Shown: positions 8,609-63,367 of the stretch, piece after piece
Layout: each line of letters opens with the position of its first letter
How positions within the stretch are numbered: the first letter of the stretch is position 1
Origin: Octopus sinensis
Lineage: Eukaryota
Direction: 5' to 3'
DNA length: 64,000 bases
NCBI RefSeq assembly: GCF_006345805.1
Contig: NC_042997.1
Span: 206,460,001 to 206,524,000 of the forward strand
Made by a program: the position numbers and the translations under genes
Notes under the pieces: generated by a model
The model's input: the letters and a program-made list of their open reading frames with translations, nothing else
Database searches by the model: none
Told to the model about the DNA's origin: nothing

Positions 8609-8974
8609 CATCCTTTAGGTTTTGTTGTCTCTTCATTTTATATTTTCTCCCTCTGAGTTGAAAACTCATTTTGTTAATATCAAGTTTTATGTTTTCCCAA
8701 TCAAGGAGTTTTTTTTCTGTGAGTATGCTTTCTCAAGCTTGGCATTTACTTTGTCTTCAAACATTTGTAGGCTTGCTGGAAAATTTTCATCAAAGTAAGA
8801 CCATTGTACCATTTTTTATAAGAGTTTCGTCATCAGTTTCTTTGAATTCCATTAATAATGATTGGACAGAGATTTTAGCATCTTTTACATGAGGCTGCCT
8901 GCCATAATTGTAATTTTGTCACTGATAAAAATCTGGACTTTATGTGTTCTCCTAATATCCCTTAATCTCAGCAT
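8609..8974 (-). pseudogene. PARP14: PARP14-like copy A, WWE-domain exon (phase 0 to 1), three frameshifts
   Basis: Acceptor TTTTATTTTCAG and donor GTACGT. Joining frames across 3 homopolymer indels gives MLRLRDIRRTHKVQIFISDKITIM/GRQPHVKDAKISVQSLLMEFKETDDETLIK/MVQWSYFDENFPASLQMFEDKVNAKLEKAYSQKK/LLDWENIKLDINKMSFQLRGRKYKMKRQQNLKD. VQWSYFD...N..LE.AY is WWE-like. The symbol is family-level only. Confidence 0.8.
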
Positions 8975-9344
8975 CTGAAAATAAAAATCAACAAAATATT
9001 TCAAGGAAGAGAGAGAGAGAGAGAACATCACTACTGCCACTAATACCTGTCACCAAGAATCACTATAAATGTTTCTAACAATCCTAAATTGACCACCATG
9101 TAGAAATACATTTTCCACAGTGGGTTGCTCTTCATTTGTTAATTTTGTTTTCGAAGACTTAATGTGAAAAATAATTTAACGTACACACTCAACTCTGAGT
9201 AAGTCTATGTGCAAATAAATATATATACATATATACTAACTTGTATTCACATTTACTAATGCTACGGTGCCCCCCCCCACATCATACACATTTATGCACA
9301 TGAATCTAACTGAACAACTAGGAAGGAATTCAATATGAATGGCG

Positions 9345-9460
9345 GACTCCTGCCTGTGGGAGGGTTTTTGACATCTAAGGTTACTTGTTCTAGCCTGATG
9401 TAAGGAATTCTTCTTTTCCAATAGTTTAATCTGTTGTGTGCATAGGAAATAACAATAATG
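9345..9460 (+). mobile_element. R4/Dong-type LINE 3' end fragment
   Basis: GGTTTTTGACATCTAAGG...TAATCTGTTGTGTGCATAGGAAATAACAATAAT matches the R4 3' end at 12310-12410. Confidence 0.7.
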
Positions 9461-9479
9461 ATACCCAACAAAACAAGGG

Positions 9480-10150
9480 CAATCTCAGTTATTGAATCCC
9501 TCCTTATTAACAAATTGAAACCATCCATTAACAACTGGAAGGAACTACACAAAGCACTTTGAGATTTCGCATTTGACTGGATAATACGATGTGGATGATC
9601 AGATCGGTGGTGGAGGTAAATGTGGGATGATGTGGACTCGCAAAATAACTCTGTCACTATTCTCCCTAAAGACAACTTAACTTTGGTGTCCAAAAATTCA
9701 ACGCTAGTTTTTGAAAAACTAGACGTAAGTTTTCTGTTGGACCTAAAGTCATAGCTTTTAGCATAAGTCACACAAATGCAAGAAGTCACTTAAACTATCC
9801 CGTGATCCTTCTCAGACAAAAAAGCTGTCATCAATTAACTGTAACCAGAGTATTGGTTCATGACTATATAGGGATTTGAATGTGTTCATTAACCATGTCT
9901 CGAATTTTGTCATGGAGACATTAGTGAAATTAATTGCCATGGGTGCCCCCATGGTGCAGCCCCTTGTCTGGTGGTAAAATTTCGTCCAAATTTCATTGTG
10001 TTACTTCGTAACGCAAACACCAATAACCTACAAAAAAACTATGATGGAATGCTTTTGTTTGACCGCTTTTCAAAGGCATTCATGCATGCTTCTACCCCTT
10101 CATCATGGTCAATATTCAGATATAAGGAAGAAACGTCCATGGTTATCAAA
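9480..10150 (-). mobile_element. Penelope-like element RT remnant
   Basis: QGCTMGAPMAINFTNVSMTKFE (GTAMG-type motif) and VEFLDTKV...TSSHIYLHHRSDHP, typical of the PLE RT C-terminus; degraded. Confidence 0.75.
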
Positions 10151-11379
10151 AACCACTTTTTTGACATGGATTTGGGGCTTTAAAAAGATTTGTACTGAAA
10201 GAGGTGATAACTGGAAACATACAAATGCTTTTGTTCATCATTATGTCAAATGCAGTTACAGTGAATCATGATTAAAGGAAATAGCAAATGACATAGCTAA
10301 GACTAGCACTATGACCCAGCGTTTTTTAAATAATTTCTTTAAATATACACCATACTTAATATTTCTTACCACTTATAACTGTCAAATCAGATATTAATTT
10401 AAATATAGCTATGCTGTCCCATTTGATGCTTATATATATATATATATTACTTCTTATGATAAATGCCTTATATTTATATCGAGTGTATATCACTTAATTA
10501 CTTATTATTATATAGAGAAAATGTTTCTTAAACATCTTACACTTGTATTTTAAAGTAACCATTAGCTGCATCAGTTTTAGTTCATACACAACTATGACTC
10601 AATAACACTATCTTAGCATATATAATAAGTATATCCGAATATGTTATGTGCTATTCACTCCATCAAGTCTTCTGTGACAATAATAATTTATTTTTTTGAT
10701 GTATTCTTTTTTTGCACAGAGGAGAACAGTAATATGTAATTAATTTAATTATAATTAAATTGATTTCTAATTTTTCTACCATGTTATTTTCATGTTAATA
10801 TTGCTGTTCGAAACGATTGTATGCATGGATTAAATCCTTTTCAAACTTTTAACATCTTCTTTTCTCCATCTTTAACAGTTTGTTCAGTTTCTGTAGGATA
10901 TTTTGTTCTATAAATTCTCATAACACACCTTATACTTTTAATATATGATATATACATTATAAAAATAGGTTAGTGTTATTTAATTTCTGAATGGTTTTAC
11001 TGCTGTTTGTTAATGTAGTTTGATTTGTTTATCCATCAGTTTCTATTAAGATAAAGGTGCAAGTAAAATTAATGATAGAGAAATGAAAATAAAACTTTGG
11101 AAACAACCTAAAGGGTGATAATTGAGAAAGACTTGAAAGTCAACATAAGATCATAATCATGTAAAGTAAAGATAACAAATAATCCTGACTTCGTGTCCGG
11201 TATCGGATCGATCCCAAAATTTAATCCATTCATGCTAGCAGTTCTTGAGATATCTTGTCCATAGACAAACAAACAAACAAGACTGAAAACAATACCTCCG
11301 CCATCACTAAGGTGGAGGAAATATTAATGATAATAAAAGGACTGATAATAATAAGGGAACTAATATTGGTAAACGACTG

Positions 11380-11972
11380 CATGGAGCTAGAGTCAATATA
11401 GACTCCTATGTAGGTAATAGTGAAGCCAGTTTATTAAGAGATGTTAAAGTCACAGCAATACATAGGGAAACCCCAAAAAGAAATTAAGTTAAAAACCAGA
11501 AAAAGAACAAAAGTTATCTGAATGGCAGGAGAAGGCTTTGCATGGTAGATTCTCAAAGATAGTTGCAGCAAATAATAGTCACAAAACATGGTTATGGTTG
11601 AAGAAAGGAAAGCTGAAAGGGAAACAGAAAGCTAGGTAGTAGCAGCACAAGATTAAGTGCTAATGACTAATTGGATAAAAACTAAGATAGACAAAAACCA
11701 AGTAGATTCCCAGTGTGAGTTATGCAAATGAAAAAGGGAAAGTGTTATAGAAAGTGAATGTAGCATGCTGGCACAGAAAGAACACAAGAAAAGATAACCT
11801 AGAGAGAGCAATCCACTGGAAGGTCTGTAGAAAGCTAGGATTTGACCATACTGATAAATTATATTAGCATGAACCTAGTAAATTATTAGAAAGTAAGAAA
11901 TATAAGATGTTGTGGGACTTTAACATTCAGACTGACAGAATAATAGAAGCTAGACGGCCTGATTTGGTGGTG

Positions 11973-12048
<76 letters not shown>

Positions 12049-19363: not shown

Positions 19364-19548
19364 TCGAGATTCTGTTAAATTTGTATCAAATGGTATTTCC
19401 TCAGTGGTCAACAGAGAAAGGTATTCTTTTTTAACAGTTTCTATAGCATTGTCAAGATTTTGGTATTTAGCAAAGAATTTCAATGTGACACCATCATCGT
19501 GTTGACCAGTAGAGACATTATCTTCTATTTCTTCATCTTCTTCATCAT
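19364..19548 (-). CDS. PARP14: PARP14-like copy A, internal exon (185 nt, phase 1 to 0)
   Basis: Acceptor CTTTTATTTCAG, donor GTAAGT; open frame (D)DEEDEEIEDNVSTGQHDDGVTLKFFAKYQNLDNAIETVKKEYLSLLTTEEIPFDTNLTESR. Phases match the flanking exons at 25154 and 8974. Confidence 0.8.
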
Positions 19549-25153: not shown

Positions 25154-25208
25154 CTGATGTTACAGCTGAGCCATCTGCTGACATTTGTTGGAAATATTCT
25201 TTAAATTT
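25154..25208 (-). CDS. PARP14: PARP14-like copy A, 55-nt exon (phase 0 to 1)
   Basis: Acceptor CTTTTAACAG, donor GTAAAT; KFKEYFQQMSADGSAVTS(D). Joins in frame to 19548; paralogue at 29095. Confidence 0.75.
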
Positions 25209-25699
25209 CTGTTAAAAGTAAGCAAATAATTCATTATCACTCAATGAAAAAATAATTAATTTCTGTTAATTACTATGCAATGTTTTAATTCATTGCTTCT
25301 ATCACAAATATTGTTTTAAATTAATATTTGCGATTATTGTATCATAGAATAACTTCCTATGATGGACAGGCTTTTGAATATTCTGTAGTTTGGGGAGGAA
25401 TTTTTACTTACAGAATAAAAAGAAATGAAATTTGCTTGTTTAAGTGACTGTAAAAAATTATTCATGGAATTGAAACTGGTATCAAGATTCCATGTTGTGT
25501 CCAAACACCAGCTCAATAACGACAAAGCTAATTTACTTTATTCTTCGTTATTTTCAAAACTGATTAAAACAAAAGAAGAATATTTGTGTTGAAATACTTT
25601 GGTTTGATGTAAATTTGTAATCCTGAAATAGAAGCTGGAGATTTTGAAGCAGTTGTTCAAAATTATCTTCTTTTTCTTGTAGCGTGACCAAATAACATT

Positions 25700-27640: not shown

Positions 27641-27669
27641 TACTGTAATTTAGTCCCAGGAGATATTGT

Positions 27670-28806: not shown

Positions 28807-29094
28807 GACAGTATATATAGCATTGAAGTAAAGCACTGTTGACATACCAGTAATTCACTGGGATTTACTCAAAGCCAGTCTGTTTCAACAGAAATGTTCT
28901 TCTTTTGGTTTTAATCAGTTTTGAAAATAATGAGGAATTAAGTAAAATCAGTTTGTCATTATTAAGCTGGTGTTTGGACACAACATGGAATCTTGATACC
29001 AAATTCAATTCCTTGAATAATTTTTTACTGTTACATAGAAAATCAATTATGTCTTTGATTGAGTGATGATAAATTATTTGTTTACTTCTAACAG

Positions 29095-29460: not shown

Positions 29461-29492
29461 TAATAACAAAGAGTATTATTTTTATTATTATT

Positions 29493-43690: not shown

Positions 43691-43742
<52 letters not shown>

Positions 43743-43864
43743 TTCTACCTTTCCTTTCTTTAATGTAAGCTCCATCCATGTGGGAATCAATTCAGAAGAC
43801 AGCAAAGAAAGCAGGTAATGTACCATGCAACTGTAAAAATGATATCCTCCTCCTCCTTCTTCTT

Positions 43865-44421
43865 GAGTGAAAGAGCAGTGCATCCCATCAAAGTGACACT
43901 GGGGTAAAATATACGAAGCCCAGTATACCCATCATGAGTACCCGTCTGATAAGGGTACATCAGGCACATGCATCACAACCATATGTTCGCAACATGGTGA
44001 TCTCATATTAAGATAAACAGCACATGACCTTGCAGGTGGGACCCAGTTAGAATTTTCCTCTGGTCGAGTAGCCCATCCTGCTCAAAAGATCCCTGAATAA
44101 GGATTGTTTAAGGGAGTTGAACGATGCACTCATGTTTCCAAAGGTGAATTATCCAAACCTCTAAGAATTCCTCTCAACACATGGCTATGATGCTTCCCCA
44201 CTACTTCTGCTCATGATCAGCGATGCACATATCGTCAGCCAGTAAGGGACAGTCTCAACTGGTTAAGGTCAAACAACTGACAAGCAAATCTGTGGTATTG
44301 AGCAGAATATTTGCTGTAACCCATCTTTTATACCAAGGCAAAACAATGTACATGATAACACTTCCAATCAGTTAAGATCAGAAGCCATGAGAACCACTGC
44401 CTGGTACTGCATCAAGGCATT
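43865..44421 (-). mobile_element. ~550-bp non-coding (AAT)n-tailed retroelement, copy 4
   Basis: Full-length homology; its 5' end abuts the tail of the R4 at 44440. Confidence 0.88.
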
Positions 44422-44439
44422 TATTATTATTATTATTAT

Positions 44440-46870: not shown

Positions 46871-46970
46871 GAGATTATCATTATTGTTATTATTATTATA
46901 TAAAGGATTGAGGTAACTCCTCCTGAAGATATAGAGTCGAAATTAAAAGAAGAGTGCCATTGTCATCTAG

Positions 46971-47011
46971 TGAACAATATTTCGACATCTTGTGTGTCTT
47001 CAACAGGCTCA
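46971..47011 (-). ncRNA. Minimal type I hammerhead ribozyme fold, variant core (Penelope-type)
   Basis: UGAGC-CUGUUGA-A-GACA[CACAAGA]UGUC-GAAA-UAUU-GUUCA: 5-bp stem I, 4-bp stem II, palindromic AAUAUU stem III, AUU cleavage triplet. Activity is untested. Confidence 0.6.
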
Positions 47012-47148
47012 ATAAATAATTTTGTCAATCTACTTCATTTTGGTTAAAATATAAAAAGGATTGAGGTAACTCCTACTGAAGATATAGAGTCAAAATAATT
47101 AAAAGAAGACACTCTTTTAATTTTGACTCTACTATTATTGTTATTATG

Positions 47149-47180
<32 letters not shown>

Positions 47181-47374
47181 CATTATTATTATTATTATTA
47201 TTATTATTACTCATCATTCAAGGTAGCAGAATCGTTATTATGCCATCCCGTTTGCGAGTCATTCAGGCCTTGTCTCTGGCTCTGCTAATATGTCATTAAA
47301 TTTCTCAGCCAACTTTTTATGTGTTCCTCTTAGGTATTTTAACCAGAAGTTGGGGATTTTGTTGTGCTTGGATA

Positions 47375-47830
47375 CCTTCCACTGCTCTATGGACCAGTTC
47401 CATAGGATTTTACTCCACTTTAAATGCTTTGCAATGTTTGTTTTTGAATGTAGTGATTTTCTGACTGCAACCCCCATGTGTAATCCGGCTTTGTACAGCT
47501 CCCTGCAAACAGTTTTTGTGGAAACTAGGTTCTCGAGGTGATCATTAAGCTGTGCAGTAATTTTGGGAGCTGTACTTTTGTGATCATTTTTAACAATTTG
47601 CATAAGAGTCTGACGGTTACTATTTGAAAGTTTTGGTTTTCTTCCAGTGTTTTGTTTCGATGAGGAGGTTTTTTCCCTCATTCTGAAAGGCTGTCATTAC
47701 TTTCGAGACAGTACTTCTTGATACACCAAACATTTTGGCTGTTTTTGTTACTCTAGTGCCTGCCATACGAGCACCAATGATTTGACCTCTGAAAGTCTGA
47801 TAGATCTGTCATTTTAATGAATTTTAATTC
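47375..47830 (-). mobile_element. Tc1-like transposase 5' fragment
   Basis: GRKPKLSNSNRQTLMQIVKNDHKSTAPKITAQLN...VSTKTVCRELYKAG...WSIEQWK (Tc1 HTH region). Confidence 0.85.
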
Positions 47831-47964
47831 CCTTTTCTGATAATATCTGAAAAGAAACAACAATTTTAGCAAAACATATTAAGCAACACTAATAATGAAT
47901 AAAAAAAAACATAAAAATAAACAAGCTTTTAATAGTTTTATAGATATTTCAAAATTTTGATGCT

Positions 47965-48420
47965 ATGATGCTAGCTGTTTCCATTATTTTGTCCAACCCC
48001 TGTATATGTCTCTCACCGAGTAAGCTATCACTGTTCCTTTCCAGTGGTTTATTAGAGATCTCACCTCAGTTTTCTGCTATGAGATTTCTTTTACCAGTAG
48101 GAACTGTATTTTCATCATTTCCTCTGCTGCTGTTTTCCAATACCCATCTTTTGAGAGCTTCAAGCTCTACTTCTGTGAACCAACGAATTTTTCTTGTTGC
48201 TCTAGCTTGATCACATAATCTCCGATCTGTGAGTTGAAACAATCTTCTTTCTCTCCATTGATCATACATACGTTGTCGGTATCCCCTAAGATGAACACCA
48301 TTTTCATCTTTGGAGTTACTCAAATTGCAACACCCCATGACCGCAGCGTTGATTTGTTAGTTCCATCTACGCCATGTGTGCTAGTCCTTTACTGGATAAC
48401 GACTGGCTGGAGTCGGACCA
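47965..48420 (-). mobile_element. R4/Dong-type N-terminal fragment
   Basis: GYRQRMYDQWRER...RLCDQARATRKIRWFTEVELE, the R4 N-terminal domain. Confidence 0.75.
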
Positions 48421-49095
48421 GTATCTCTGAGCTTGCTGGGTGCAACACTGTCATCACTGTCATCATCAAGGGCTTCAGTTTCATTACCATCGTTATTCAC
48501 AATATTTTTGTCATTGTCACTCATATGAGGTGGCCATTATCAGGTTACGCAATTACCAGTGTTTTTATTGTGACACCATCACTAGATGCATCATCGATCA
48601 GAGCATAAGGAGATTCCAACCACTTCCTTTTGTTATTATTATTTTCATTTTTTCTACTAATATTTGTCATTGTTAATATTTCCTCTGACCCAACTTCAGT
48701 TTTGGCTAAATTATTATTATTATTATCATTATTACCATCATTATTATTAATTCTATTTATTATTAAAAGGTATTATTGAATGTTGTTTAGTTTCAGCTTT
48801 TGTCTTGTACTTGAGATGATCATAAATATGTGAGTGTTTAAGGGAATTGTAGGAGCAAAAGAGACAGCTTGGTGAACAGATTAAATTCTACAGGTCTGTA
48901 AATAGATTTGGCAGATGGTGAAGAGATTAGCAATGGGTATTCCTGTGTGATAAAGAGACAAAAGCAGCCTCACACCTTTGGGGGCTGCAGAGGTCAAATG
49001 TGTTTACTACTACTAGCGATCAATGAGAGCGCTGACCTTGGCCTTGAAAAAGAACCAATTCACCCTATTCTATTTTTAAGTACTGATCGGGAAAA

Positions 49096-49137
<42 letters not shown>

Positions 49138-49760
49138 GAGAGATATAGATATACTGATGTTCACCTCAAATTTCTTAATTTTTTTTTTTTAATTTTTCTT
49201 TTTGTTTTATAAGTTTTGCTGTGGTTTACAGTTTTTGTAATTGTGCAGTTTGTATATATTGGCAGGTGCTTACCTTCTTAATTTTTTTTTTTATCATGCA
49301 TTTAATTGTGTTGTTACAGTGAAATGTATATTTACATATCCGGGTAGTCTGGAAAAAAGAAAGATAAAATTTTCACACGAAATTGTAGATATCAAAGTTT
49401 CTAAATTTTGTAGAGATATTTGTTCATATGTCCGAACAGAGAAAACTTGTAGTGTTCTTAGTATAAAAAGGATGTTTACATTTTCGAATACTCAGGAAGA
49501 AAGGAAAGTATAGGTATTCACAGAAGTTGTAGATATTAAAGATTTTAAAGCTGATCATTTGTGCCTTGGAAGACTTTAGATATGTAAGTTTCTCATTTTG
49601 AAGGAAATTTAAAATACTCACGGGAATCTGTGGATATTCCACTCTTTAAGAGTTATTTTTCAGTTGTCCTTCTGACTTGTATTAGTGTGATTCTGTGTCT
49701 TCAGTTATTGACTGGTCAGAGAAGCAAGAACATGTCCAACCACTGTCAATGCTGGCACTC

Positions 49761-49819
<59 letters not shown>

Positions 49820-49899
49820 GATTCTCATCAATGCTCAGAATTTCCCCGAGAACATCATCACACTTCCCCGACATTAATCCTCTGTAGGTTTCTAAAGCA

Positions 49900-50545
49900 G
49901 AGCATCTACTGACTCCCATTACCCAAATTGTAGAGGGCTGTGAGCTCCTGAAGACATTCTAAGTGCCTGGCGCCCAGTCTCGGTTTTTTCTTCACCCATG
50001 ATTGCAGCTCCATCAGGGAGAAGAGCTGTGGGTAATTTCCAGATGTCCTTGGCTTGGCAGTGCTATTGGGGAATGCTGGATGTGCTGTGAGATGGATTTT
50101 TCTGAGGTGCACACAGAGTGACACAAACGTTCTGCACACCCTCATTCAGTGTCCGGGCATTGCTGACTTGTGAAGTTATGTCTAACAGCTGCTGTAATGT
50201 GTGAGATGGATCCATCTGTCAGCCGAGTCTGTAGTGATGATTGCCCTGCTGCCCTCCTTGAATCGGGCAGGCAAGGCAGTTTTCCTTTGCCTGGTGGCTG
50301 TGCTGAAAGTGTTTGTTTGGTGGACAAAAATGAAGGGCATGAGGACAGATACATTCCTCATTGGTAGAGCTCTCATTGACTTCTTCGAAAAGAAATTGAG
50401 AGTGAAGAGGGAAGTGCTGTCCTTGAGTGTATTTATCAAAAGATGGGTGGAAGTTGCAAAAACGGCAAGAGTGGATGGGTTCCCCTCTAAGTGTAGACCT
50501 GCAAGTCGGAGAGAAGGAATTGGAGAGAGCACTTGCTCATAGGGT
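49900..50545 (+). mobile_element. L1/Tx1-type LINE 3' fragment
   Basis: TNVLHTLIQCP (C-terminal Cys/His motif) and WWTKMKGMRTDTFL...FIKRWVEV resemble a Tx1 ORF2 C-terminus. Confidence 0.6.
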
Positions 50546-51019
50546 TTCAGGGAAATGTCAGACAGTGGAGTTCCTCAATTATTCCTAGAGGCATTCCTGT
50601 ATCAGGTGGGCCACATCTTTTATCATCCTCCCTCCTGCATATTTTTTGATACCTCTGTATGCTATGCATGTGTGTCCTCTTTCCCAGTGTATACCGTGTA
50701 AACCTCTTTCTTTTTATTCATTTACCATTTCATTATTACATGTAAACCTTCCACACTTTATGTCTGTCTTTGTATTGTCTCCCTCAACTTTTGCCCTTGT
50801 GGGAAAATAAATGAAATCAACATCATCATTATTATGTTCTACCTTTGCAGGTAACTCGCTGAGAGATCACTTGCTTTTTGGAAAGAACAAAGGTAAGGTA
50901 CCATGCAACTGTAAAACTGATATTATATTATATTATTATTATTCCTTCATAACACAGTGTAGGTATACTGCACCAGAGTCTTTAGTCATCTGTCAAGTCA
51001 CAAGAAGGACCTCAGACAG

Positions 51020-51440
51020 ATAAAACTTACCTTAAGGTGTGCGCTGTGCCCATTAAGTCTGCTTGTTGCAAGACATCAATCTTGCATGGGATTTCCAGTT
51101 GCCTAAAGAAGTCTTGAAGTTTCAATGGGATTGAGTCCAACACTCTGATCACCACTGGTATCGCTTTTACATTACCCTCTCGCATTCCATACAGTCTTAC
51201 CATTTCCCCTTTCAATTTGGAGTACTTGGTAATTTTTTCAACCTCTTCTCTCACAACATCCATGTCATTTGGTATGGCTACATCAATGATCTGACAGTAT
51301 TTCTCTCTTTTATTCAATATGACAATATCCGACCGACGGTGTTCGATTACACAATCCGTCTGAAAAATCATAGTCCCAAGAGTATCGTTACTTTTCCATC
51401 CTCCTGCACAACTTTACTTGGTGCATGCTCATACCTGTTC
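51020..51440 (-). mobile_element. RLE-type LINE 3' fragment
   Basis: FQTDCVIEHRRSDIVILNKREKYCQIIDVAIP...KITKYSKL. Confidence 0.8.
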
Positions 51441-52270
51441 ACTGTTACTTCAAATTCGTATATACTGGGCCTCAAAACCAGTTTTATATTATGATCAGTA
51501 AAACTGAAACGGATTTGCCAAAACCAATTTAAATGTTTGCTGTTTCTGTTTTTTTTTTTTTCGCAAAACATTTCTCCATTTTTTCTTTTCAAGAAATATT
51601 GAAACTGAACTAACTGAACTGTTGAGAATGCTGTCTGTTTCATTGAAACATATTGCAACATATCAATTCTCACCTTCTCTCCCCTTGAACCTTAGATCAG
51701 CACTTTGTCATTTCCTTTGCTAACCCCTGGCTGACTCTTTGAATTTGGAGGTAATAGAGTTTATTCATAGCAAGTCAAGGGGATGCTGTTAGTCTTCAGT
51801 CGGGTGATCTTTCCCGTTGAGCATATGTAATAACCAGTTCCAGATTCATTTGAAGGAAGTAACACTAACTAAATTTTTCTTAATTATTTTCAAAAAGAAA
51901 ATCAACTGTTTGGAAATTTTTCGATAGGAAAAACAAAGATGAAGCTCAATGCAATAAGTGTGATAAGATCATGAAGTCTTCTGGAGGATCTACTACGTCT
52001 GATCTTGCACTTGAAGAAAATTCATCAAATCGGCATAAATCAAGATGCAAACCCGCCTCCTGTGAAAATGACAACAACAATGGAACACTTTGTAACAAAG
52101 AAATCAATGGAAGAAGAGGTTTCAAAGTTAGCTGCTATGGATGGATTCTCTTTCAATTCAATCGCCAAAAGCGATTTTATTCAGAGAAATCTTCATAGTC
52201 AGAGAGGAAAATATGATAAATTACAACCAACATCTGTAAACGGAGTCAGGAATATGGTAATGAATTATTA

Positions 52271-52795
52271 CAGTGGTTCCCAAACTTTTTAGAGTCACGA
52301 CCCACTATTTATCACACCAGTTTATGACGACCCACTTAACTCTACTGAGTAAAAACATTAATGAAATTAACAAATCTATTTCAGATTACATCTTCAGTGA
52401 GGCCTGTGAGAAGGATGAAACAAAACGTTTTATAACTGTTTCAACGTCTCTATACCCTATGTGTAAATATTAACACTAATACAAAACCTTGAAGTAGTAA
52501 CTGTTATCGACTCGATCAGTATTATACTTCACCTAGTTAAAGTTCTCTATAGGTAGGTAAAAACAGACCTTTCCTTTTTACAATTACGTACGAATAGATA
52601 ACTTGAGAAAATGACAACCTCTGATTTGTTAAGTTCGGGAAAAAGCCTACTGCTTGATAAAACAACAAGTCTGGTATTGAAAGCATAAGTCTTGAACTAT
52701 CTCAATAGACAGCAGTTAATCAAAGCTAATGCGTAATTTTATAACTTTTTGCGACCCACTAAGATTCCGTTCGACTCATAGTTTGGGAACCACTG
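52271..52795. mobile_element. hAT-type MITE (525 bp)
   Basis: 16-bp TIR CAGTGGTTCCCAAACT; perfect 8-bp TSD AATTATTA (52263-52270 and 52796-52803). Confidence 0.95.
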
Positions 52796-53073
52796 AATTA
52801 TTACATAACCAAGAAAGAAGAACTTATTCATTATTTCAAAAAAGAAGCAGCACTACTCATAGACATTGGATGAATACACATCAATTCAAAATAAACGATA
52901 TATGAACATAAATGTTCATGGGAAAGACAATCATTGGTCGTTGGGTCTCATTCAGATCCATGGCTCCCTTAATAGCAGGAGAACAGAGTAATTTGTGAGA
53001 GGACATCTTCGTGAATTTGGATTGGATTTGGATATACACATTGTTGGCTGTACGATGGATGGTACTTCTATGA

Positions 53074-53454
53074 TACTCTTTTACTCTCTCTTTTACTTGT
53101 TTCAGTCATTTGACTGCGGCCATGCTGGAGCACCACCTTTAGTCGATCAAATCGACCCTGGGACTTATTCTTTGTAAGCCCAGCACTTATTCTATCGGTC
53201 TCTTTTTGCCGAACCGCTAAGTTACGGGGACGTAAACACACCAGCATCGGTTGTCAAGCAATGCTAGGGGGACAAACACACACATACATACATATATATA
53301 TATATATTCTTTCAGTTTCCGTCTACCAAATCCACTCACAAGGCATTGGTCGGCCCGGGGCTATAGCAGAAGACACTTGCCCAAGATGTCACGCAGTGGG
53401 ACTGAACCCGGAACCATGTGGCTGGTTAGCAAGCTACTTACCACACAGCCACTC
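53074..53454 (-). mobile_element. tRNA-derived octopus SINE inserted in the hAT transposase
   Basis: Minus-strand head AGTGGCTGTGTGG (A-box)...GGTTCAGTCC (B-box); tail (AGAGTAAA)-like. Confidence 0.88.
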
Positions 53455-55139
53455 ATGCGCGTATGAAGGTGAAATTCAGAAAAGAAATAAGACCTGATCA
53501 CCAACAATATCTCACACATTGCATACATCTGTCTGTGATTGACATTCTCTATCAAAGAAATATTGAAAATATTGCCTCAATCGATGAGACTGATAAAAAA
53601 AAGTGAAGAGATCGCTATAACAGACGATAGTGATGATGATGCTCACATGAGCCAACAAGACATACTTTGTCAAACAGATTTGGCTCACAAAAATGCTTGT
53701 TTTCCCCAGCTAAAACCTGAATTTAACAAAGTTTTAAATAAGGTAAGAAAAATTTCAAAACTTTTCCGTAAATCTCCTACAAAAAAAGGAAATTTTGCAA
53801 GATTTTGTACAAGCGAACTTTGATAACAGAGATTATAAACTTATACTGGATTGCAGAACTGGGTGGAATGGCACATTCCATATGATTGAGAGATTTTTGA
53901 AATTGAAAAGCTGCATTCCAAATGCTCTACGAGCAGTATTTTCCACAGATGCTGTAGCTGAAGAAGAATAGAAATCTCTCGATTTACTATATGAAATTCT
54001 GCATCCATAGAAATTATTTTGAAGGTTATTTGCACTGATGATACAGATTAACTGAACCCTTTGGCTCTAAATCTTCGTGAAAGACTTATGCATAGATATA
54101 ATAAGAGAAGAAATGTTAAAACCTTGACTCTCTTGAGGTATTTACATAACCCAAGGAAATTTAAAGGTGAGTCAATTTCTAAATCTTTCTATTTTTTAAC
54201 GAAACAACATTTAAGGAAGTATGCTGAACAAACATATAGGAGATTATTTCCTGAACATGACGCTGAGAACACAACAGAATTATACAAAGAAAATGAAATA
54301 GGAGGGAACCTAAAAACAAGTGTTACTGTTTGTCCCATCTACTTACGAAGGTAATGAACTCATGCGTGAATACAGAAGCACAATGAAGAAAATTAATGAA
54401 GAGCCCAAGATAGTAACAGATGGATTTGAAATCTCTAAAGAATTTGAATATTTTGAAGCAACTTCGAACAGAAGTGAAAAGCTCGAGAAACTTTATAGAA
54501 CATTGCTTACAACTAAAGCAACTATTGTCCAGTTGGAAAGAGCTTTTTCAATTACTGGATTTTTCAACACAAAAATTAGGATAAGTTTGTCAGGTAAAAC
54601 ACTGAATGCATTGTATTTTTTAAAAGATTATTTTCCAAGGAAAGTGAATGAAAGCAAGTCAAGAAACTTGATTGATTCTCAAAAATACGACGACTTGGAC
54701 AAACGTTGCATTCCTGATTAAATAAATCTAATACCATTATTTTTTGTTATTGTTTGTAAATAGATACAGATACAGGCACCATCTCTATACACAAATATAT
54801 ATTAAGAGAAGGGAAGTAGTCAGAATATTGGACATTTACTTATTTAGGGCTGTCATCTCTTTTTGAGAGATTTATGAAGAATTGTTTATTTACAGAAAGT
54901 TCATGCTTTTACACATATGGGGGTTTGTTTACAAAATCTGGAGTTGAATTGGAAAGCAAAGGTTCTTTTTTATTTTGAATCTATGGATGTGTGTGGTGAA
55001 TTTTTAGTGGCTTGGTTGAACAGAAGAAAGGGCAAAAGGAATAGAAAAAGATAAGGAGAAAGGCAGAAAGAAGTGAAAACAAAGGAAGAAAGAAGGAAAA
55101 AGAGAATGAAAGCTTTCCTTGTTTCTTTCTGTATATCAA

Positions 55140-57884
55140 TGTAACGAACTTAGTGTTGTGAATAATTTCTCTTGTACTTTTGGGGTACAAGAAAGCAATC
55201 ACTAGCCGTTGCTTTAATAATCCAGATTCTCTACCAGTCAGAAACAACAAGACGCAGACGTAAAATATATATATACTACTTTATTCTCTAATGTGGTAAG
55301 AGTAACAATAAGTGGTTATCTGGTATCCCTTTGGTATAAATGTGTCAGTGCTGAACCTTATCGCTGTAAAATAAGAAAGTGTTCAAATGCAAAACGACAC
55401 TGGTCAAAGATGGCGTCCGGAACAGGGAGATGTGGTCTGCAACAATTTGGTGAAAACCTTCAGCCGACTGCTATCAGAGCTGGAGAGCGAGAAAATATAC
55501 GTCCGTTGCCTTCGGTCGCTGCTGTCCCAAGTCGTTGGCTGCTGCTGCTAGCGGTCAAACGTTCTACGACCCCCTTGCCTTGGCTAACTACCACGTAGGC
55601 AAAAGGGTCGTGCTTCCGGTGGTTCGCGCATGCCCGAGAGGGCCCTTCCTTTCTGTGCCTTGGTGAAGGCACCAACACTCGCACGCGCGAAATAGAAAAT
55701 GGACGGTGCGCGCGCGCGCACCGTTATAGGATCACTACAAGGCTCCCCTCCAGTGCGTACGCACGAAGGAAACTTATTGTAGTGACTGCAAAACTCAAGG
55801 TGGACACCAGACAACCAAACAGCACACAATATAATAAAATGGCAAAATTTATAACATACACAAGAAATTTACTAAAGGAAAAAGAGAAAAAATACTCAAT
55901 GAGCAAAAATCAAGAGTGCATGCCTGAAAGTGTATACGTCACAAAGTATAAACCCTTCCGCTGAAAGGAGCGGAGGGAAAGCAAAACTCACAGTCAATGA
56001 ACCTAGGCGAAATTAAATCCAACTTCTCTAAAGGTAGTTGATCCTGCAAAAATAGCAGTTAAATCAATTGCTGCAGGAGAGGAAATGGAATTGACAGAAG
56101 CTCGCTAGTAACACAAAAGGCAAAAGTGCAAACATGCTGGTGTGATGCGCGACACAGATAATTTTCTGTTAATTACGTGACCAACAGTGGTCTAACAGGG
56201 AAAAATAATTACGCCTAAACACGGCGCAGCGCATGTGAACATCCAACGTCCTATGAGTCGGGAAAAAAACTAAGCTACTGCAAACGTGTTGCAAAAAACA
56301 AGGCAATACACGTGCGAAGCAAAGGCGCATGAAATGCAATAGTGCTTGCCAGACCGAAAAACAGCAATGAATATGCCAGTGGTTGAGCGATTATATGCCT
56401 CGTTCGTACAGGAACAAAAGTATGACATGCTGGCGCGTTATAATGAACAAACAACCCTCTCTATGTATACGTGACCCCTAGGGTCTATAGAAATGAGGTG
56501 TGTCCACAAAAGGCAAATTTAGCATGGAACAAACAAGCGAGAAAAGCATGTGTGACGTATGTATGTGAGAGAGATAGCATTTAGTGTGTGTACGTGTGTG
56601 CGACAAAAATACATACAAGGTGAAATGCGAGCAAAATATAAAAAAAATACAGTGCATAGAAAAAATGTCTCTCGGGGCTATTCCAGACAAGAGTTAATTT
56701 ACCAGTCTGTAATAGCCTGATGCACAATAGCAGTTCGTTCTGTAACAGAAATGTTGAAATCACAAAATGCAGATGCCGGTTGAACACAATGTGTAGCGGT
56801 TGTAGCTTCGATGCTGTGACAGGTTAACTGGGTACAGAAGAAATGTCGTAGATAGACGGTGCTGTTAATCCTTGGTGTGCATATGCACATAGAGCGTGCA
56901 CGCTAAAGTTCCGCGAGTTGCTATGTACATCTTGGTCGACGGTGTTGAAAGGCGACGGTGGTGGAGGAAAGCGACTGTAGTGGACTTGATACAACATCGT
57001 TCTTAGTGATGATGGCGACGAAGATAGCGACGACGTGAAGTAGAAAGACGACGATGGCGATGACGAAGGTGGAGAAAAGGCATCGAATATATGATGGCGT
57101 CCGTCATCATGGCTGTAGAATAAGAAAGAGGCTCCTTCTACAACTGTTTGTAGTGGCCGGAAACAAATCGTCGAAGGATGATGACTGCGTAGAGTTAAAT
57201 CGTGTTCCGACTTCGCAGAAAAACTGGATTTTTTTTGTTGTTCAGTGATCTCTGGTTTTAGACCAGAATCACGTCGGGGTCACCACTGTAACGAACTTAG
57301 TGTTGTGAATAATTTCTCTTGTACTTTCGGGGTACAAGAAAGCAATCACTAGCCGTTGCTTTAATAATCCAGATTCTCTACCAGTCAGAAACAACAAGAC
57401 GCAGACGTAAAATATATATATACTACTTTATTCTCTAATGTGGTAACAGTAACAATAAGTGGTTATCTGGTATCCCTTTGGTATAAATGTGTCAGTGCTG
57501 AACCTTATCGCTGTAAAATAAGAAAGTGTTCAAATGCAAAACGACACTGGTCAAAGATGGCGTCCGGAACAGGGAGATGTGGTCTGCAACAATTTGGTGA
57601 AAACCTTCGGCCGACTGCTATCAGAGCTGGACAGCGAGAAAATATACGTCCGTCACCTTCGGTCGCTGCTATCCCAAGTCGTTGGCTGCTGCTGCTAGCG
57701 GTCAAACGTTCTACGACCCCCTTGCCTTGGCTAACTACCACGTAGGCAAAAGGGTCGTGCTTCCTTGTTCGCGCATGCGCGAGAGGGCCCTTCCTTTCTG
57801 TGCCTTGGTGAAGGCACCAACACTCGCACGCGTGAAATAGAAAATGGACGGTGCGCGCGTGCGCACCGTTATAGGATTACTACA
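55140..57884 (-). mobile_element. Non-autonomous LTR retrotransposon (2.75 kb)
   Basis: LTRs at 55140-55739 and 57287-57884 with TG...CA ends and roughly a dozen differences by eye. PBS at 57268-57285, PPT GGAGGGGAG at ~55743-55751. No gag or pol recognised. Flanks TCAA/ACAA form an imperfect TSD. Confidence 0.92.
57268..57285 (-). promoter_or_regulatory. Primer binding site complementary to the tRNA-Trp 3' end
   Basis: TGGTGACCCCGACGTGAT, 1 nt from the 5' LTR. Confidence 0.85.
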
Positions 57885-58508
57885 ACAATTATCCAAAATT
57901 CTGATTACCTCTTTTTTCTAAATGCATAAGCTTGTACATCACTTCAAATAAATATATGCATATATATATATATATATATATATAATGGTACGATTCGTTT
58001 ATTTTTGGTAGTAATGACTTTGAAAGTCCCTCCTAGCGTGTGGCATTTATGTGTAATAATGCCCTCTATATAATATATATATATATATATAATTCTATAG
58101 TTCATCTTAATTATATCGTTGTCAAATGTCTTGCGTTAAATATATATTTAATTCTATAGCTCAAATCTCGTTAGATATAGAATAAATGTATTTATAATTT
58201 ATAGCTCTTTATCGCTCACGCTTCTCCCATAGATCAGGAAAAATACCTCTCTCTCAAATTTAGGTATTTATACCTACTAATAACTATTTCTCCCCAAGAA
58301 AGGAATGGCTGCTGGTTTTCGCGGTGCACCCGCCCTCCCACCCCCTCCACCGGTACAGGAAGTCCTAAATTTTCTCATCCTTGTCTCCCTTGTACACTTC
58401 AAAGTCTTATGCCACCCTCACCCCCTACCATAAAAGGTAGTGGTCATTCATTGCAAGATATGTTTAGTGTTGTGTACGCGGTTTGAACTTGAGTTTTATT
58501 GTTTGTCT

Positions 58509-61500
58509 ATGAATCCTGCCAAACGCGAGTTTTCTTTTCAGGTCCATGACGCTACTGGGGCCAATACCACCCACACCCACACCCTCAGGGTTGGCACCCT
58601 CAACGTTGGTACACTGAAAGGCAGATCTGGCGAGATCGTTGAATTGCTTGAACGGAAGTGTGTTGATATATGCTGCATTCAAGAAGTGAGGTGGAGAGGA
58701 GGTTCTGCTAGGTTCCTCACAGGCAAAGGACACAGGTGCAAGATTTTCTGGGCTGGTAATACTGATGGGGTCGGGGGTGTGGGTATGCTTATCGCCGAAA
58801 AATGGGTAGATAAGGTAATCGAGGTAGTCAGAGTATGTGACAGAATACTTAAGATTAGATTAGTGCTCCATCATAGTTTAGCAACTATTATATCGGCCTA
58901 TGCCCCTCAGCCAGGGCTACCTGATGGACAGAAAGACTGTCTCTATGACACCCTACTGCAGACCACCTCATTGACTAACGACAGGGACCTTCTCTTTGTG
59001 GCTGGTGACTTCAATGGGCATGTTGGACGATGTGCTGGAGGCTTCCATGGCGTGCATGGAGGCTACGGTTATGGTTCCCGCAACGAGGAGGGAACCAGGC
59101 TGCTGGAGTTCTGTGATGCGAATAGCCTTATGGTTTGCAACACTAACTTCAGGAAACCGACACCCCACCTGGTCACCTGCTGATCGGGCCGGCATACTAG
59201 TCAAATCAACTACATCCTTGCCAGAAAAAGGGAAAGATGGCTGCTTATAAATGCCAAAACCTTCCCAGGCGAAGAATGTACCCCACAACATAGACTGGTA
59301 GTTAGTGACTTTAGGATCAGGACTAAGAGGACGATTAGAAGACGACCAACATGGAGAAGAAGGGTCTGGAAGCTTAAAGACCCTGCAAATGGACAGAGAT
59401 TTAGAGAATTGTTACTTGAAGCCTTTGACGAAATAGAAGGGGGTATAGCTACACATGGGGTAGAAGACAACTGGACGCTTCTAAGGGACAACCTGCTGAA
59501 AGCCACTGACCAGACCTGTGGCTGGTGCAAAGTCCCCTCAAGACCCAAAATAACGTGGTGGTGGAACAATATTGTTGACAGGGCTATTAGACAAAAGAAA
59601 CAGGTTTGGAAGGACTGGAAAAATTGTGGTAGCAGGGAAGTGTATCAGACTGCCAGAAGGGAAGCTAGGAGGCAGGTGTATTTAGCCAGAGGGGAAGCAG
59701 ATAAGAAAAAAATTGCCAATGTCCTGCGCCGGGAGGATGAAAGACTTGAGGTATTTCGTGTTGCAAGACAGTGTGTGAGAGAGAATCGTGACGTAGTGGG
59801 AGAGAAATGTGTTCGCAAGGATGACGGTTCACTTGCGCTAAATGAGGATGCAAAGAGAGAGGTTTGGAGATGCCACTATGAAAGGTTGCTGAATGAGGAA
59901 AATGAATGGGATAAAGAGAGTCTGCCGAATGTCAACCCAACAGAGGGACCAGCAATCTGAGTTGATAGTTCCTTAGTAGTTAAGGCAATTACAGAAATAA
60001 AAACAGGGAAAGCCCCAGGCCCATCAGGTATTACTGCAGAGATGCTCAAAATATCTGGTAGTGTCGGTTATAGCCTACTCACCCGTATAGTTAACCAGAT
60101 GATACACGAAGGAGTCATACCCAATGACTGGTGTAGCAGCATAATAGTCAGCTGCTACAAAGGTAAAGGTGACGCCCTAGATACAAATAACTACAGGGGT
60201 ATCAAGCTGCTGGATCAGGTAATGAAGGTTATGGAGAGGGTTATAGCCCAACTAATTAGAGAGAGAATTAGCTTAGATGAGATGCAGTTTGGGTTCGTGC
60301 CAGGGAGAAGTACTACTGATGCTATATTCCTGGTAAGACAGCTGCAGGAGAAATACCTAGCCAAAGATAAACCCTTGTACCTGGCTTTTGTTGACATAGA
60401 GAAAGCCTTCGACAGGGTTCCCCGATCCCTTATCTGGTGGTCAATGAGGAAACTAGGGATAGATGAATGGTTAGTTAGAGCTGTGAGAGCCATGTACAGA
60501 GACGCTGCTAGTAAGGTGAGGGTAGGCAACGAGTACAGTGAAGAATTCCGGGTAGAGGTTGGGGTCCACCAAGGTTCAGTCCTCAGCCCCCTCCTATTTA
60601 TCATAGTCCTCCAGGCAATAACGGAGGAATTCAAGACAAGATGCCCCTGGGAGCTCCTCTATGCTGATGACCTTGCTCTAATTGCTGAGTCACTATCAGA
60701 ACTGGAGGAGAAGTTTCAGGTGTGGAAGCAAGGTCTAGAATCGAAGGGCCTCGGAATCAATCTAGCCAAAACCAAAGTCCTAATAAGTAGGAAAGTAGAC
60801 AAGTCACAAACGCCTTCAGGTAGATGGCCCTGCTCGATCTGTAAAAAAGGTGTAGGTAGAAACACTATAAGGTGCACCAAGTGCAAGCTATGGACACATA
60901 AGAGGTGTAGCAATGTCAAAGGAAGGCTAACTAGGAAAATAGTTTTTGTCTGTGGCAGATGCTCAGGAGCAATAAACACTGTAAATGTGCAGAGACCAAC
61001 GTCTACCATGTTCCAGGAAGAAAAACTAGAAGTAGTTGATAGCTTCCGCTACCTAGGTGACCAAGTCAGTAGCGGGGGTGGGTGTGCTGAAAGTGTAATT
61101 GCTAGAGTAAGAATAGCCTGGGCAAAGTTTAGAGAGCTCTTACCCCTGCTGGTGACAAAAGGCCTCTCGCTAAGAGTAAAAGGCAGACTGTATGATGCAT
61201 GTGTACGTACAGTCATGCTACATGGTAGTGAAACATGGGCTGTGACTGCTGAGGATATGCGTAAGCTCGCAAGAAATGAAGCCAGTATGCTCCGATGGAT
61301 GTGTAATGTCAGTGTTCATAATCAACAGAGTGTAAGTACCTTGAGAGAAAAGTTGAACCTAAGAAGCATCAGTTGTGGTGTGCAAGAGAGACGGCTGCGC
61401 TGGTATGGTCATGTGACGAGAATGGGTGAAGATAGTTGTGTGCAAAAGTGCCACACTCTAGCAGTTGAGGGAACCTGTGGAAGAGGTAGACCCAGGAAAA

Positions 61501-61616
61501 CCTGGGACGAGGTGGTGAAGCACGACCTTCGAACTTTAGGTCTCACCAAGGAAATGACTAGAGACTGAGACCTATGGAAGTATGCTGTGCGTGAGAAGAC
61601 CCGGCAAGACCAGTGA
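58509..61616 (+). pseudogene. RTE APE-RT ORF in one frame with 3 premature TGA codons
   Basis: ORFs ending at 59183, 59960 and 61568 are in the same frame; the natural stop is probably TGA at 61614-61616. The start ATG is uncertain. Confidence 0.88.
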
Positions 61617-61689
61617 GAACAGTCAAAATCAAACCAAATCAACATCAGTGGAAATTGCAGCTGTGGTTAAGCGAACCATCCAATCGTTT

Positions 61690-61925
61690 GTCCGTTGCCA
61701 GCACCGCCTGGCTCCCGTGCCGATGGCACGTAAAAGCACCATCCGCTCGTGTCTGTTGCCAGCCTCGCCTGGCCCCCGTGCCGGTAGCACGTAAAAGCAC
61801 CATCCATTCGTGTCCGTTGCCAGCCCCGCCTGGCCCCCGTGCCGGTGGCACGAAAAATCACCATCCATTCGTGGCCGTTTGCCAGCTCTGTCTGGCACCT
61901 GTGCAGGTGGCACGTAAAAAGCACC
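61690..61925 (+). repeat. ~60-bp minisatellite, about 4 units, in the RTE 3' UTR
   Basis: Same unit as 340-1280. Confidence 0.9.
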
Positions 61926-62071
61926 CACTACACTCACGGAGTGGTTGGCGTTAGGAAGGGCAACCAGCCATAGAAACACTGCCAGATCTGACTGGGCCTG
62001 ATGAAGCCTTCCGGCTTCACAGACCCCAGTTAAACCGTCCAACCCATGCTAGCATGGAAAACGGACGCTAA

Positions 62072-62106
<35 letters not shown>

Positions 62107-62112
62107 ATATAT

Positions 62113-62310
62113 ATAACGGGAAGGTTTACGAAAATAAACAAAAGACGAAGGCAGGTGGAATACAAACAAACAATGTATTAGTATGGTGCTCAGGAATAGA
62201 AATAAAACAAGTCTTTTACGTTTCGAGCCTACGCTCTTCGACAGAAAGATACACAGAAAAGAAACAAGGAAAGAAAAAAATTGCGTGTAGGGGCTAACGA
62301 TCCAACATGG
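62113..62310 (-). mobile_element. Short Penelope-type (pseudo-LTR-like) repeat containing a hammerhead fold
   Basis: Flanked by (AT)n; carries GAAGAGCGTAGGCTCGAAACG on the minus strand. The PLE assignment is inferred from the hammerhead. Confidence 0.6.
62212..62249 (-). ncRNA. Minimal type I hammerhead ribozyme fold, variant core
   Basis: UCUUU-CUGUCGA-A-GAGC[GUAG]GCUC-GAAA-C-GUA-AAAGA: 5-bp stem I, 4-bp stem II, ACGU palindromic stem III, GUA triplet. Confidence 0.65.
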
Positions 62311-62666
62311 CGTATATATATATATATATATATATATATCTGAGGCCATCATCATCATCATAATCTTTTAACATCTGTTTTCCATGCCAGAAATGGGTTG
62401 GATGGTTTGATGTCAGTGCTCTTATGTCTGCTTTGGTAGGAGTTCATCATCACACCCACTAGCACCACCATCACAACCATTATCTCACCAACACCCCCAC
62501 TACAACAATTACTAGACTACAGTGCTGTGTTTTATATTTCAATATTTGTTGTCTAAACCCCAAAATTAGTCAAAATATTCCTGCTTTGTTTTTTTTTAAC
62601 TTTCAACAGAAAGGGTTCATAATTTTATTTTAATTCTGAAATATTTGATTTCTATTTGAACTTTAG

Positions 62667-62800
62667 AACCAATCCCAGATACATGGTCACCAATGGAAGA
62701 CGAGGAATTAATTAAAATCGTTCCAGTCACAAAAGGACCAGAATATGATGACATCCAGGCCACTTTCCGTCGGAATTTGCCTTCCTATCGTATAATCAAA
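62667..62800 (+). CDS. PARP14: PARP14/15-like copy B, first catalytic-domain exon (phase 1 to 0)
   Basis: Acceptor TTGAACTTTAG, donor GTTTGT; (E)PIPDTWSPMEDEELIKIVPVTKGPEYDDIQATFRRNLPSYRIIK fits the P..W..M...EY...F start of macro-PARP catalytic domains. Confidence 0.88.
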
Positions 62801-63189
62801 GTTTGTATTTTTACTTCTGTTTATAAACAATATTTGATGGTTTATTGTTAAAACAAAATGTTAAGAGACATTTTCTTTGTATAAAAGACTTAAATCTCAT
62901 AGTATGAACCTATTTTGGGATGGTTTTATGTGTTTTTGGATATTCACAAGAAATCTTTGCTCAACAAAAATACCTCTGCTTTAACTTCTTGCATTGAATT
63001 GTAAATGCAACACCATTTTGCAGCTAAACTATTATGCCTTACCAAAATTTACGGTTGAATCAAAATTGGTATCAAATAAAAAAGAAAAAAACAAGCAGAT
63101 AGGGTTGGGGATTTTCACCACAAACGTTATTTCCTTGTCAAAGAAGAGAATTGATTGTCTTTTCATAAATGTATTTTCCTTTTCTACAG

Positions 63190-63367
63190 ATTGAGAGAAT
63201 TCAAAATAAAACATTGTACCAGGGATACCAATCATTGAAAAGAAAGTTTGAGGCAGAAAATCCAAACATTACAAATGAAGTTGATGGCCTTTGGCATGGT
63301 ACTGCTGAAGGAGCTGTTAAGGGAATAAATAAATCAGGATTCAACCGTAGCTATTGTGGTAGAAATG
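63190..63367 (+). CDS. PARP14: PARP14/15-like copy B, catalytic exon (phase 0 to 1)
   Basis: Acceptor TTTTCCTTTTCTACAG, donor GTAAGT; IERIQNKTLY...LWHGT...GINKSGFNRSYCGRN includes the catalytic His (HGT) and the GFNRSY motif of PARP14/15. Confidence 0.93.

Follow-up and report, generated by a model that had tools for sequence, protein, structure and literature searches.

The window analysed here, a stretch of 64,000 nt of Octopus sinensis (NC_042997.1, positions 206,460,001 to 206,524,000 of the forward strand), appears from its exons to hold fragments of macro-PARP genes and no complete member of that family. We consider it probable, at roughly 0.6, that a single non-homologous rearrangement junction fuses two 5'-truncated remnants of different paralog lineages head to head. 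The setting would be a transposon-rich octopus macro-PARP cluster that has expanded in this lineage. The remnant on the minus strand (the minus arm) would be a decaying copy of the type that carries a WWE-like exon, cut within an intronic RTE-like retroelement, and the remnant on the plus strand (the plus arm) would be a WWE-less copy, cut in the intron just 5' of its 55-nt exon. Their ends would have been joined by end-joining with 3-bp microhomology, probably either when both 5' halves of a divergent gene pair were deleted or at one breakpoint of an inversion. What the sequence shows directly is the junction, both truncations, the separate ancestry of the arms and the frameshifts; the type of event is inferred. 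The feature looks like a fresh instance of a well-known kind of event, an ordinary structural rearrangement and not a local duplication or a switch.

The octopus relatives follow two exon designs. In the first (P0009, P0004 and P0025), macro exons are followed by the 55-nt exon, an acidic linker exon (ex2), a WWE-like exon and the PARP exons; in the second (P0013, P0015, P0017 and P0023), the macro exons and the 55-nt exon are followed, with an optional short exon between, by the PARP exons. The 55-nt exon always stands directly 3' of the last macro exon in the annotated relatives (..DTEIVK/KFKEYFQ..; here and below a slash marks a boundary). For comparison we used three loci of O. sinensis, namely contig VCDQ01000207.1 encoding P0004 (L001), CM016859.1 at 206.66-206.69 Mb holding P0001 (L002) and contig VCDQ01000156.1 encoding P0009 (L003), and three of O. 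vulgaris, namely chromosome OX597814.1 at 9.46-9.51 Mb with gene P0025 on the forward strand (L004), the same chromosome at 7.63-7.74 Mb with gene P0017 on the reverse strand (L005), and a reverse-strand locus 0.7 Mb from L004 (L006). The protein searches returned octopod sequences only, and the names PARP14-like and PARP15-like given to octopus models are NCBI automatic annotation. Exon order and splice phases in the window are continuous with those of annotated transcripts (P0009, P0025 and P0013), and its catalytic exons exceed the Pfam cut-off for PARP, which bears out a preliminary description of the locus, made from its letters alone, as pieces of PARP14/15-like macro-PARP genes.

A three-way alignment locates the junction at 28803-28805 (Table 1). 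The window tracks L003 through the RTE-like element up to GCTGGTA at 28805; past this point L003 reads GCTGGTA/TGGTCATGG, which is RTE coding sequence, and the window instead continues with AGACAGTATATATAG. On the side of the plus-arm intron, L001 reads CTCTGTA/GGACAGTATATATAG at the matching point, and the sole overlap of the two junction partners is the 3-bp microhomology GTA. Both a fuller RTE-like copy in the window (58576-61621) and the orthologous copy in L003 extend more than 200 nt beyond the truncation point. Non-LTR (long terminal repeat) elements normally retain their 3' ends, and therefore the break would have followed the insertion of the RTE-like element. An exact-match look-up of a 77-aa open reading frame that spans the junction returned no record. 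A pair of exactly complementary inversion breakpoints at L001 23336/23337 was also considered and dropped, because the site marks the boundary of an insertion present in both L002 and L004.

The two 55-nt exons lie 3,887 bp apart in divergent orientation and stand in the same splice context (aacag/AAATTT...CATCAG/gtaaat), with 41 of 55 bases in common by our own count. Frame 1 is the sole open frame of the minus copy; the closest annotated peptide to the plus copy is that of O. sinensis P0012/P0014 (KFDEYFQGNTTGSSAASS). Self-BLAST of the 64-kb window aligned 25071-25262 with 29231-29040 (77.7% over 193 nt, E 2e-35) and 25432-25614 with 29046-28863 (85.4% over 185 nt, E 9e-52), homology far beyond chance. 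The paralogous exons pointing apart, with canonical splice sites, and the inverted homology of their upstream introns are thus as first described, and the outer limits given there are real: the WWE-like exon ends at 8609 and PARP catalytic exon 2 at 63367. Apart from the 55-nt exon, the arms have in common no more than some 370-540 bp on its flanks; 3.2 kb lies between the inverted-repeat arms, and the plus copy has a deletion of about 175 bp in its intron at 29050/29051. When the arms were compared by tBLASTn, the 55-nt exon was the only exon in common and the remaining matches were transposon. The claim that the locus consists of two macro-PARP 3' halves does not hold, since ex2 and the WWE-like exon occur on the minus arm only and the PARP exons on the plus arm only.

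On the minus arm the 55-nt exon, ex2 and the WWE-like exon are present, and no others of the full set. The phase-1 donor of the 55-nt exon fits the phase-1 acceptor of ex2, and the phase-0 end of ex2 fits the WWE-like exon, which occupies the position expected from P0025. Ex2 has 96% amino acid identity to P0025 of O. vulgaris and occurs as the same exon in O. sinensis P0009 and P0004. Because these exons match the order of the WWE-type design, the minus arm would belong to it. Its nucleotide sequence agrees: from 8543 to 28594 the window is 97.4-99.4% identical to L004, and from 12826 to 28805 about 95% identical to L003 (about 3.6% substitutions), both spacer retroelements being included in each case. 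By these figures the window comes from a genome very near that of O. vulgaris. Compared with its intact O. vulgaris counterpart, the WWE-like exon is short of nucleotides at three places, with deletions of 1 nt (TTT to TT), 2 nt (TTAAGGAAATG to AAAAAATG) and 1 nt in an A-run, and it runs into premature stops after ..KITIMAGSLM and after ..QKKNSLIGKT. When the frame was corrected, 8974-8609 gave 16.8 bits against Pfam WWE, below the cut-off of 21.1, over model positions 1-58 of 67; all Pfam scans were of chosen, hand-joined, stop-free pieces (the spacer retroelements, candidate exons and the hAT region described below). The minus arm is probably a pseudogene. In L001 the WWE-like exon (22679-23040) has a 1-nt deletion of its own, and because of this frameshift P0004 ends there, so that at least two family members may be decaying in the same exon.

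Low-stringency searches found no PARP exon of the minus arm within the window, and such exons, if there are any, would lie beyond it. Homologues of the intron segment S, which follows the WWE-like exon, are upstream of PARP catalytic exon 1 and collinear with it in L001, L002 and L004; in the window S runs into a 6.6-kb (ATT)n satellite and not into PARP exons. S is about 92% identical to L004 (32027-32515) and L002 (4964-5472), and the adjoining 2.5 kb is 98.3% identical to L004. Moreover, L004 and L002 have in common a 6.3-kb insertion and a 17-bp deletion at S, and the window and L001 are without both. This pattern suggests gene conversion or recombination between paralogs.

The plus arm has a diverged 55-nt exon followed by the first two PARP catalytic exons only. 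A low-stringency search of 29150-62666 found no ex2, WWE-like or linker exon, and the phase-1 donor of the 55-nt exon is compatible with the phase-1 acceptor of PARP exon 1, as in P0013; the arm fits the WWE-less design in these respects. The two catalytic exons (62667-62800 and 63190-63367) together gave 28.1 bits against Pfam PARP (PF00644; cut-off 26.7) over model positions 3-76 of 199 with LWHGT present, and the remainder of the domain, including the tyrosine and the third triad position, is beyond the window. Its closest sequences are not those of the minus arm: 28806-29050 is 93.8% identical to L001 15122-15360, the arm from 28803 on is 83-91% identical to and collinear with the 3' part of P0017, an 89-kb gene in which 28 kb of transposon-filled intron precedes PARP exon 1, and the region of PARP exon 2 is 95% identical to the P0001 locus. 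PARP exon 1 includes the ATG with which the 184-aa catalytic-only PARP15-like models of O. sinensis and O. bimaculoides (P0001 and P0003) start. By analogy with these models, a short protein with the catalytic part alone may still be made from the plus-arm PARP exons, starting at this ATG, and the 55-nt exon of the arm may be an orphaned relic.

Table 1. Coordinates of the features of the two macro-PARP remnants, the spacer and the junction in the 64-kb window.
Feature	Position	Strand	Remarks
Rearrangement junction	28803..28805		GCTGGTA/AGACAGTATATATAG
55-nt exon, minus copy	25154..25208	-	KFKEYFQQMSADGSAVTS plus 1 nt; canonical splice sites; peptide identical in O. sinensis P0009
55-nt exon, plus copy	29095..29149	+	KFHEYFQGNTTGDSTASS plus 1 nt; splice sites intact
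Intron remnant 5' of minus 55-nt exon	25209..25614	-	includes inverted-repeat arm 25432-25614
Intron remnant 5' of plus 55-nt exon	28806..29094	+	includes inverted-repeat arm 28863-29046
Two short open segments	24389-24315 and ~24222-24087	-	match alternative 5' exons of O. vulgaris P0025 (MGHKSDSNDS... / ..THDEFRTQSS..QMMW); junction between the segments approximate
Acidic linker exon ex2	19364..19548	-	DDEEDEEIEDNV...NLTESR; phase-1 start, phase-0 end
WWE-like exon	8609..8974	-	aligned to intact O. vulgaris exon L004 25252-25623 and to P0025
Intron segment S	8043..8543	-	3' of WWE-like exon
First non-LTR retroelement fragment (R4 in the preliminary description)	25687..27585	+	Pfam RVT_1 E 4e-12; C-terminal CCHC/RHD-like motif
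RTE-like retroelement fragment	~27618..28805	+	Pfam RVT_1 E 6e-10; 3' end truncated
Transposon-rich interval	29150..62666	+	33.5 kb; 86-91% identical to and partly collinear with long intron of O. vulgaris P0017
PARP catalytic exon 1	62667..62800	+	EPIPDTWSPMEDEELIKIVPVTKGPEYDDIQATFRRNLPSYRIIK; phase-1 acceptor
PARP catalytic exon 2	63190..63367	+	IERIQNK...LWHGT...SYCGRN plus 1 nt

The first alternative to be weighed is an assembly artefact, in which the contig would be chimeric at about 28805 and would join cluster members that are not adjacent in the genome. The region is repeat-rich, the O. sinensis assemblies are fragmented here (unplaced contigs; a 100-N gap in L002), the closest public assembly, that of O. 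vulgaris at L004, is without the junction and diverges within the same RTE, and the three homopolymer-associated frameshifts hint at an imperfect consensus. However, assemblers mis-join inside long near-identical repeats, and the join is not within such a repeat, which counts against an assembler mis-join: its left side is the orthologous RTE copy up to the junction and its right side a low-copy intron, with an overlap of 3 bp. A mis-join through a switch among RTE copies is likewise unlikely, because the final 210 nt of the fragment have 11 mismatches to the orthologous L003 copy and at least 22 to any other. Nor does the join have the form of a fold-back artefact, since the arms are only 74-85% alike, 3.2 kb apart and distinguished by the 175-bp indel. 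We regard an artefact as unlikely and infer that the junction is biological.

Several points nevertheless weigh against our reading of two fused remnants. L004 leaves the RTE 210 bp earlier than the window does, at the equivalent of 28596, and enters unrelated transposon-rich DNA, and therefore at least one further event or error is needed. All three frameshifts of the WWE-like exon are in or beside short homopolymers and may partly be consensus errors. The locus is a mosaic (segment S, seams at 29050 and 62900), by which orthology is blurred. The macro exons could sit beyond the ends of the window, there is the small chance of a chimera at 28805, and the window alone fits a deletion and an inversion alike.

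The second alternative concerns the macro exons. When the whole window was searched on both strands with 25 octopus family proteins, no macro-domain exon was found; the preliminary description had seen no 5' exons in the gap between the 55-nt exons, and the absence of macro exons extends to the 29 kb 5' of the plus exon and the 39 kb 5' of the minus exon. It had proposed that the 5' exons lie outside the window and that one copy is nested antisense in an intron of the other. In this alternative, of interleaved or nested functional genes, the 5' macro exons of one or both genes would survive beyond the window and one 3' half would be antisense within a giant intron of its partner. This is consistent with the open frame and both splice sites kept by the plus 55-nt exon, whose phase fits PARP exon 1, and with the long introns of the family: introns of 28-55 kb are annotated, and P0009 and P0017 span 55 kb and 89 kb, respectively. 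In L002, moreover, a gene model for a 1275-aa RRM-Macro-PARP protein encloses the 184-aa gene P0001, which has the same orientation. On the other hand, the 29 kb and 39 kb searched are free of macro exons, and the minus-arm WWE-like exon is frame-broken. In the relatives the macro exons are close and collinear. The last macro exon of P0009 in L003 (55390-55611) is 4.1 kb 5' of the 55-nt exon (59710-59766), in the order last macro exon, complete 3' part of the RTE-like element, the other spacer retroelement and 55-nt exon, with 0.6 kb between retroelement and last macro exon; in L001, too, there are macro exons about 5 kb further upstream. With macro exons 4-5 kb upstream and collinear in the relatives, the state of the window is therefore a derived truncation and not an ancestral interleaving, and any nesting would be a recent by-product of the break. 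Nested functional genes are accordingly also unlikely in our view. Of the loci of P0024, P0021 and P0018, taken as candidates for the O. vulgaris equivalents of the lost macro exons, the one compared, L006, is 84-95% identical to L003 and not clearly orthologous.

A variant of the nested arrangement starts from an inversion: a transcript that begins in the RRM-macro 5' half of one gene could skip the inverted block and be spliced to 29095, then to the PARP exons. It is quite improbable that an inversion built such a chimeric gene, with the RRM-macro 5' half of the WWE-type gene left of the window on the plus strand and splicing across the inverted WWE-type 3' half to 29095 and the PARP exons, to give a WWE-less, PARP15-like enzyme. 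If it did, the decaying WWE-type 3' half would be a giant antisense-nested intron, and in the pre-mRNA the inverted copies at 25.07-25.61 and 28.86-29.23 kb would fold into an extended, imperfect hairpin, a natural substrate for ADAR editing or splicing control in a cephalopod.

An old inverted partial duplication, also put forward earlier, would mean that the intron, the 55-nt exon and a downstream part were duplicated locally in inverted orientation, followed by divergence and differential exon loss. The inverted homology is nearly symmetric about a transposon-filled spacer, as such a duplication would leave it. Yet the arms are not each other's closest relatives. They are 73.7% identical over the common stretch and at most 85% locally, whereas for the same stretch L004 matches the minus arm at 98.9% and L003 at 96.7%, and the plus arm, as noted above, is also far closer to another locus; a local inverted duplication is therefore unsupported and largely refuted. 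Furthermore, some 57 bp of the ancestral intron (28806-28862) persist in the plus arm, in the position occupied by the retroelement end in the minus lineage, and the spacer retroelements belong to the ancestral intron of the minus arm, judging from the O. sinensis comparison. We consider the duplication very improbable; the inverted intron homologues are better taken as exon flanks that would be conserved in all family members.

The possibility of sense/antisense pairing of the inverted introns stands in a restricted sense: if the arms were transcribed together, on one transcript over both, a very stable duplex is predicted (cofold gain -240 kcal/mol vs -9 +/- 3 for shuffled partners), which is a trivial consequence of their homology. 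It is hardly credible that the inverted repeats serve to exchange or silence 3' ends, whether as an invertible segment or as a regulatory antisense or double-stranded RNA device, because the repeats are 185-193 nt long at 78-85% identity (75-85% being poor for homologous flipping) instead of long, near-identical and flanking a promoter or exons, the spacer has retroelement fragments only so that a flip alters nothing, and a transcript over both arms is purely hypothetical.

The content of the spacer had been described as retroelement debris alone, and this is what we found: two RVT_1-matching fragments and nothing else, with no 5' exon or promoter candidate between the inverted repeats. The C-terminal CCHC...RHD-like motif of the first is typical of elements with a restriction-like endonuclease. 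An inverted copy of this fragment, with 89% identity, occurs at 36944-38823; the fragment itself lies at the same site in L003 and L004, and both fragments are also intronic in these two loci. The inverted copy sits among three direct copies, 75-79% identical, of an element of about 2.9 kb (31409-34225, 34331-36266 and 39510-42393), a nested accumulation of transposons in the plus-arm intron. Further on in this intron are a degenerate hAT-type DNA transposon with several stops (51884-54718, plus strand; zf-BED 20.6 bits and hAT C-terminal dimerisation domain 23.2 bits in joined pieces of its reading frames) and two direct repeats of 604 bp with 97.5% identity, 2.1 kb apart (55137-55740 and 57284-57885), which could be the LTRs of a small or internally deleted LTR element.

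Tandem and dispersed repeats occur elsewhere in the window. A GC-rich 61-bp tandem repeat has 16 copies at 309-1281 and recurs at 61689-62115; it follows RTE-like elements in the window and at L002 13372-14406, L003 7651-8624 and L005 65.8-66.4 and 84.2-84.8 kb, and looks like a tail or satellite tied to the RTE-like family. The satellite next to S is an AT-rich, ATT-like period-3 array of 6.6 kb (1456-8034; 76% matches, GC content 12-20%). It begins, right after the last intron segment of the minus arm, within a dispersed repeat that by eye resembles a short interspersed element. A dispersed repeat of about 570 bp interrupts the array at 4523-5098 and recurs at 18521-19079, 29475-30032 and 43857-44440.

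The family itself is large and fragmentary, and apparently undescribed. O. sinensis, O. vulgaris and Argonauta together have 22 models named PARP14-like, of which many are macro-only, PARP-only or otherwise partial. In O. vulgaris, family models (macro-only, macro-PARP, WWE-PARP and catalytic-only) extend over at least 1.8 Mb on both strands, with L004 forward and L005 and L006 reverse at 0.7-1.8 Mb from it. P0025 starts at alternative exons 3' of the 55-nt exon and continues, collinearly, with ex2, an intact WWE-like exon and three PARP exons. L005 has two copies of the 55-nt exon (486-539 and 35827-35880), 35.3 kb apart within and just upstream of P0017, with the same peptide and an equally matching upstream intron, which suggests that a large segment of the cluster was recently duplicated in tandem. 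The 100-N gap of L002 (4708-4807) is just 5' of the segment that normally follows the WWE-like exon, and the unplaced contig L003 may belong in it. Literature searches for an octopus macro-PARP expansion turned up no paper on one; the sole find was a study of the skin-mucus proteome in which a PARP14-like protein is named (PMC11431876).

The importance of the locus is modest: octopuses carry a large, structurally unstable macro-PARP gene cluster, and the window offers a concrete route of domain loss and reshuffling, by breaks inside intronic retroelements. The gene family is a more interesting by-product of this analysis than the junction. Annotators would do well to regard the minus arm as a remnant, truncated and frame-broken, and the plus 55-nt exon should not be assigned to a PARP gene without RNA evidence.

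Finally, each part of the fusion of two truncated remnants has counterparts in known systems. The minus arm is like the octopus WWE-type genes P0009, P0004 and P0025 in exons, order and splice phase, and at the DNA level it matches the loci of P0009 and P0025 with 95-99% identity; unlike it, P0009 has macro exons 4.1 kb upstream, and P0025 has an intact WWE-like exon and collinear PARP exons where the window has satellite. The plus arm is like the WWE-less genes P0013, P0015, P0017 and P0023 in its 55-nt exon and in the compatible phase of PARP exon 1 (..TASS/ELVPDTW of P0013), and P0017 also has a long transposon-filled intron, partly collinear with that of the plus arm; in place of the macro exons of these genes, however, the plus arm has a junction to an inverted gene of the other type. 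The junction has nothing unusual among end-joining deletion or inversion breakpoints in transposon-rich tandem families: it is single, has 3-bp microhomology, truncates a non-LTR element at its 3' end and is flanked by truncated remnants of the kind that gather frameshifts, and the reciprocal junction that an inversion would leave was not seen. Macro-PARPs are fast-evolving, immunity-linked genes with recurrent gain and loss in vertebrates. Compared with the vertebrate mono-ADP-ribosyltransferases PARP14 (macro x3-WWE-PARP) and PARP15 (macro x2-PARP), the window has only 3' fragments without macro exons and a WWE-like exon that is sub-threshold and frame-broken. The order suggested by the octopus relatives is comparable, (RRM)-macro-linker-WWE-like-PARP or macro-linker-PARP, and the catalytic exons of the window share with PARP14 and PARP15 the LWHGT histidine motif and a PARP match above the Pfam cut-off.

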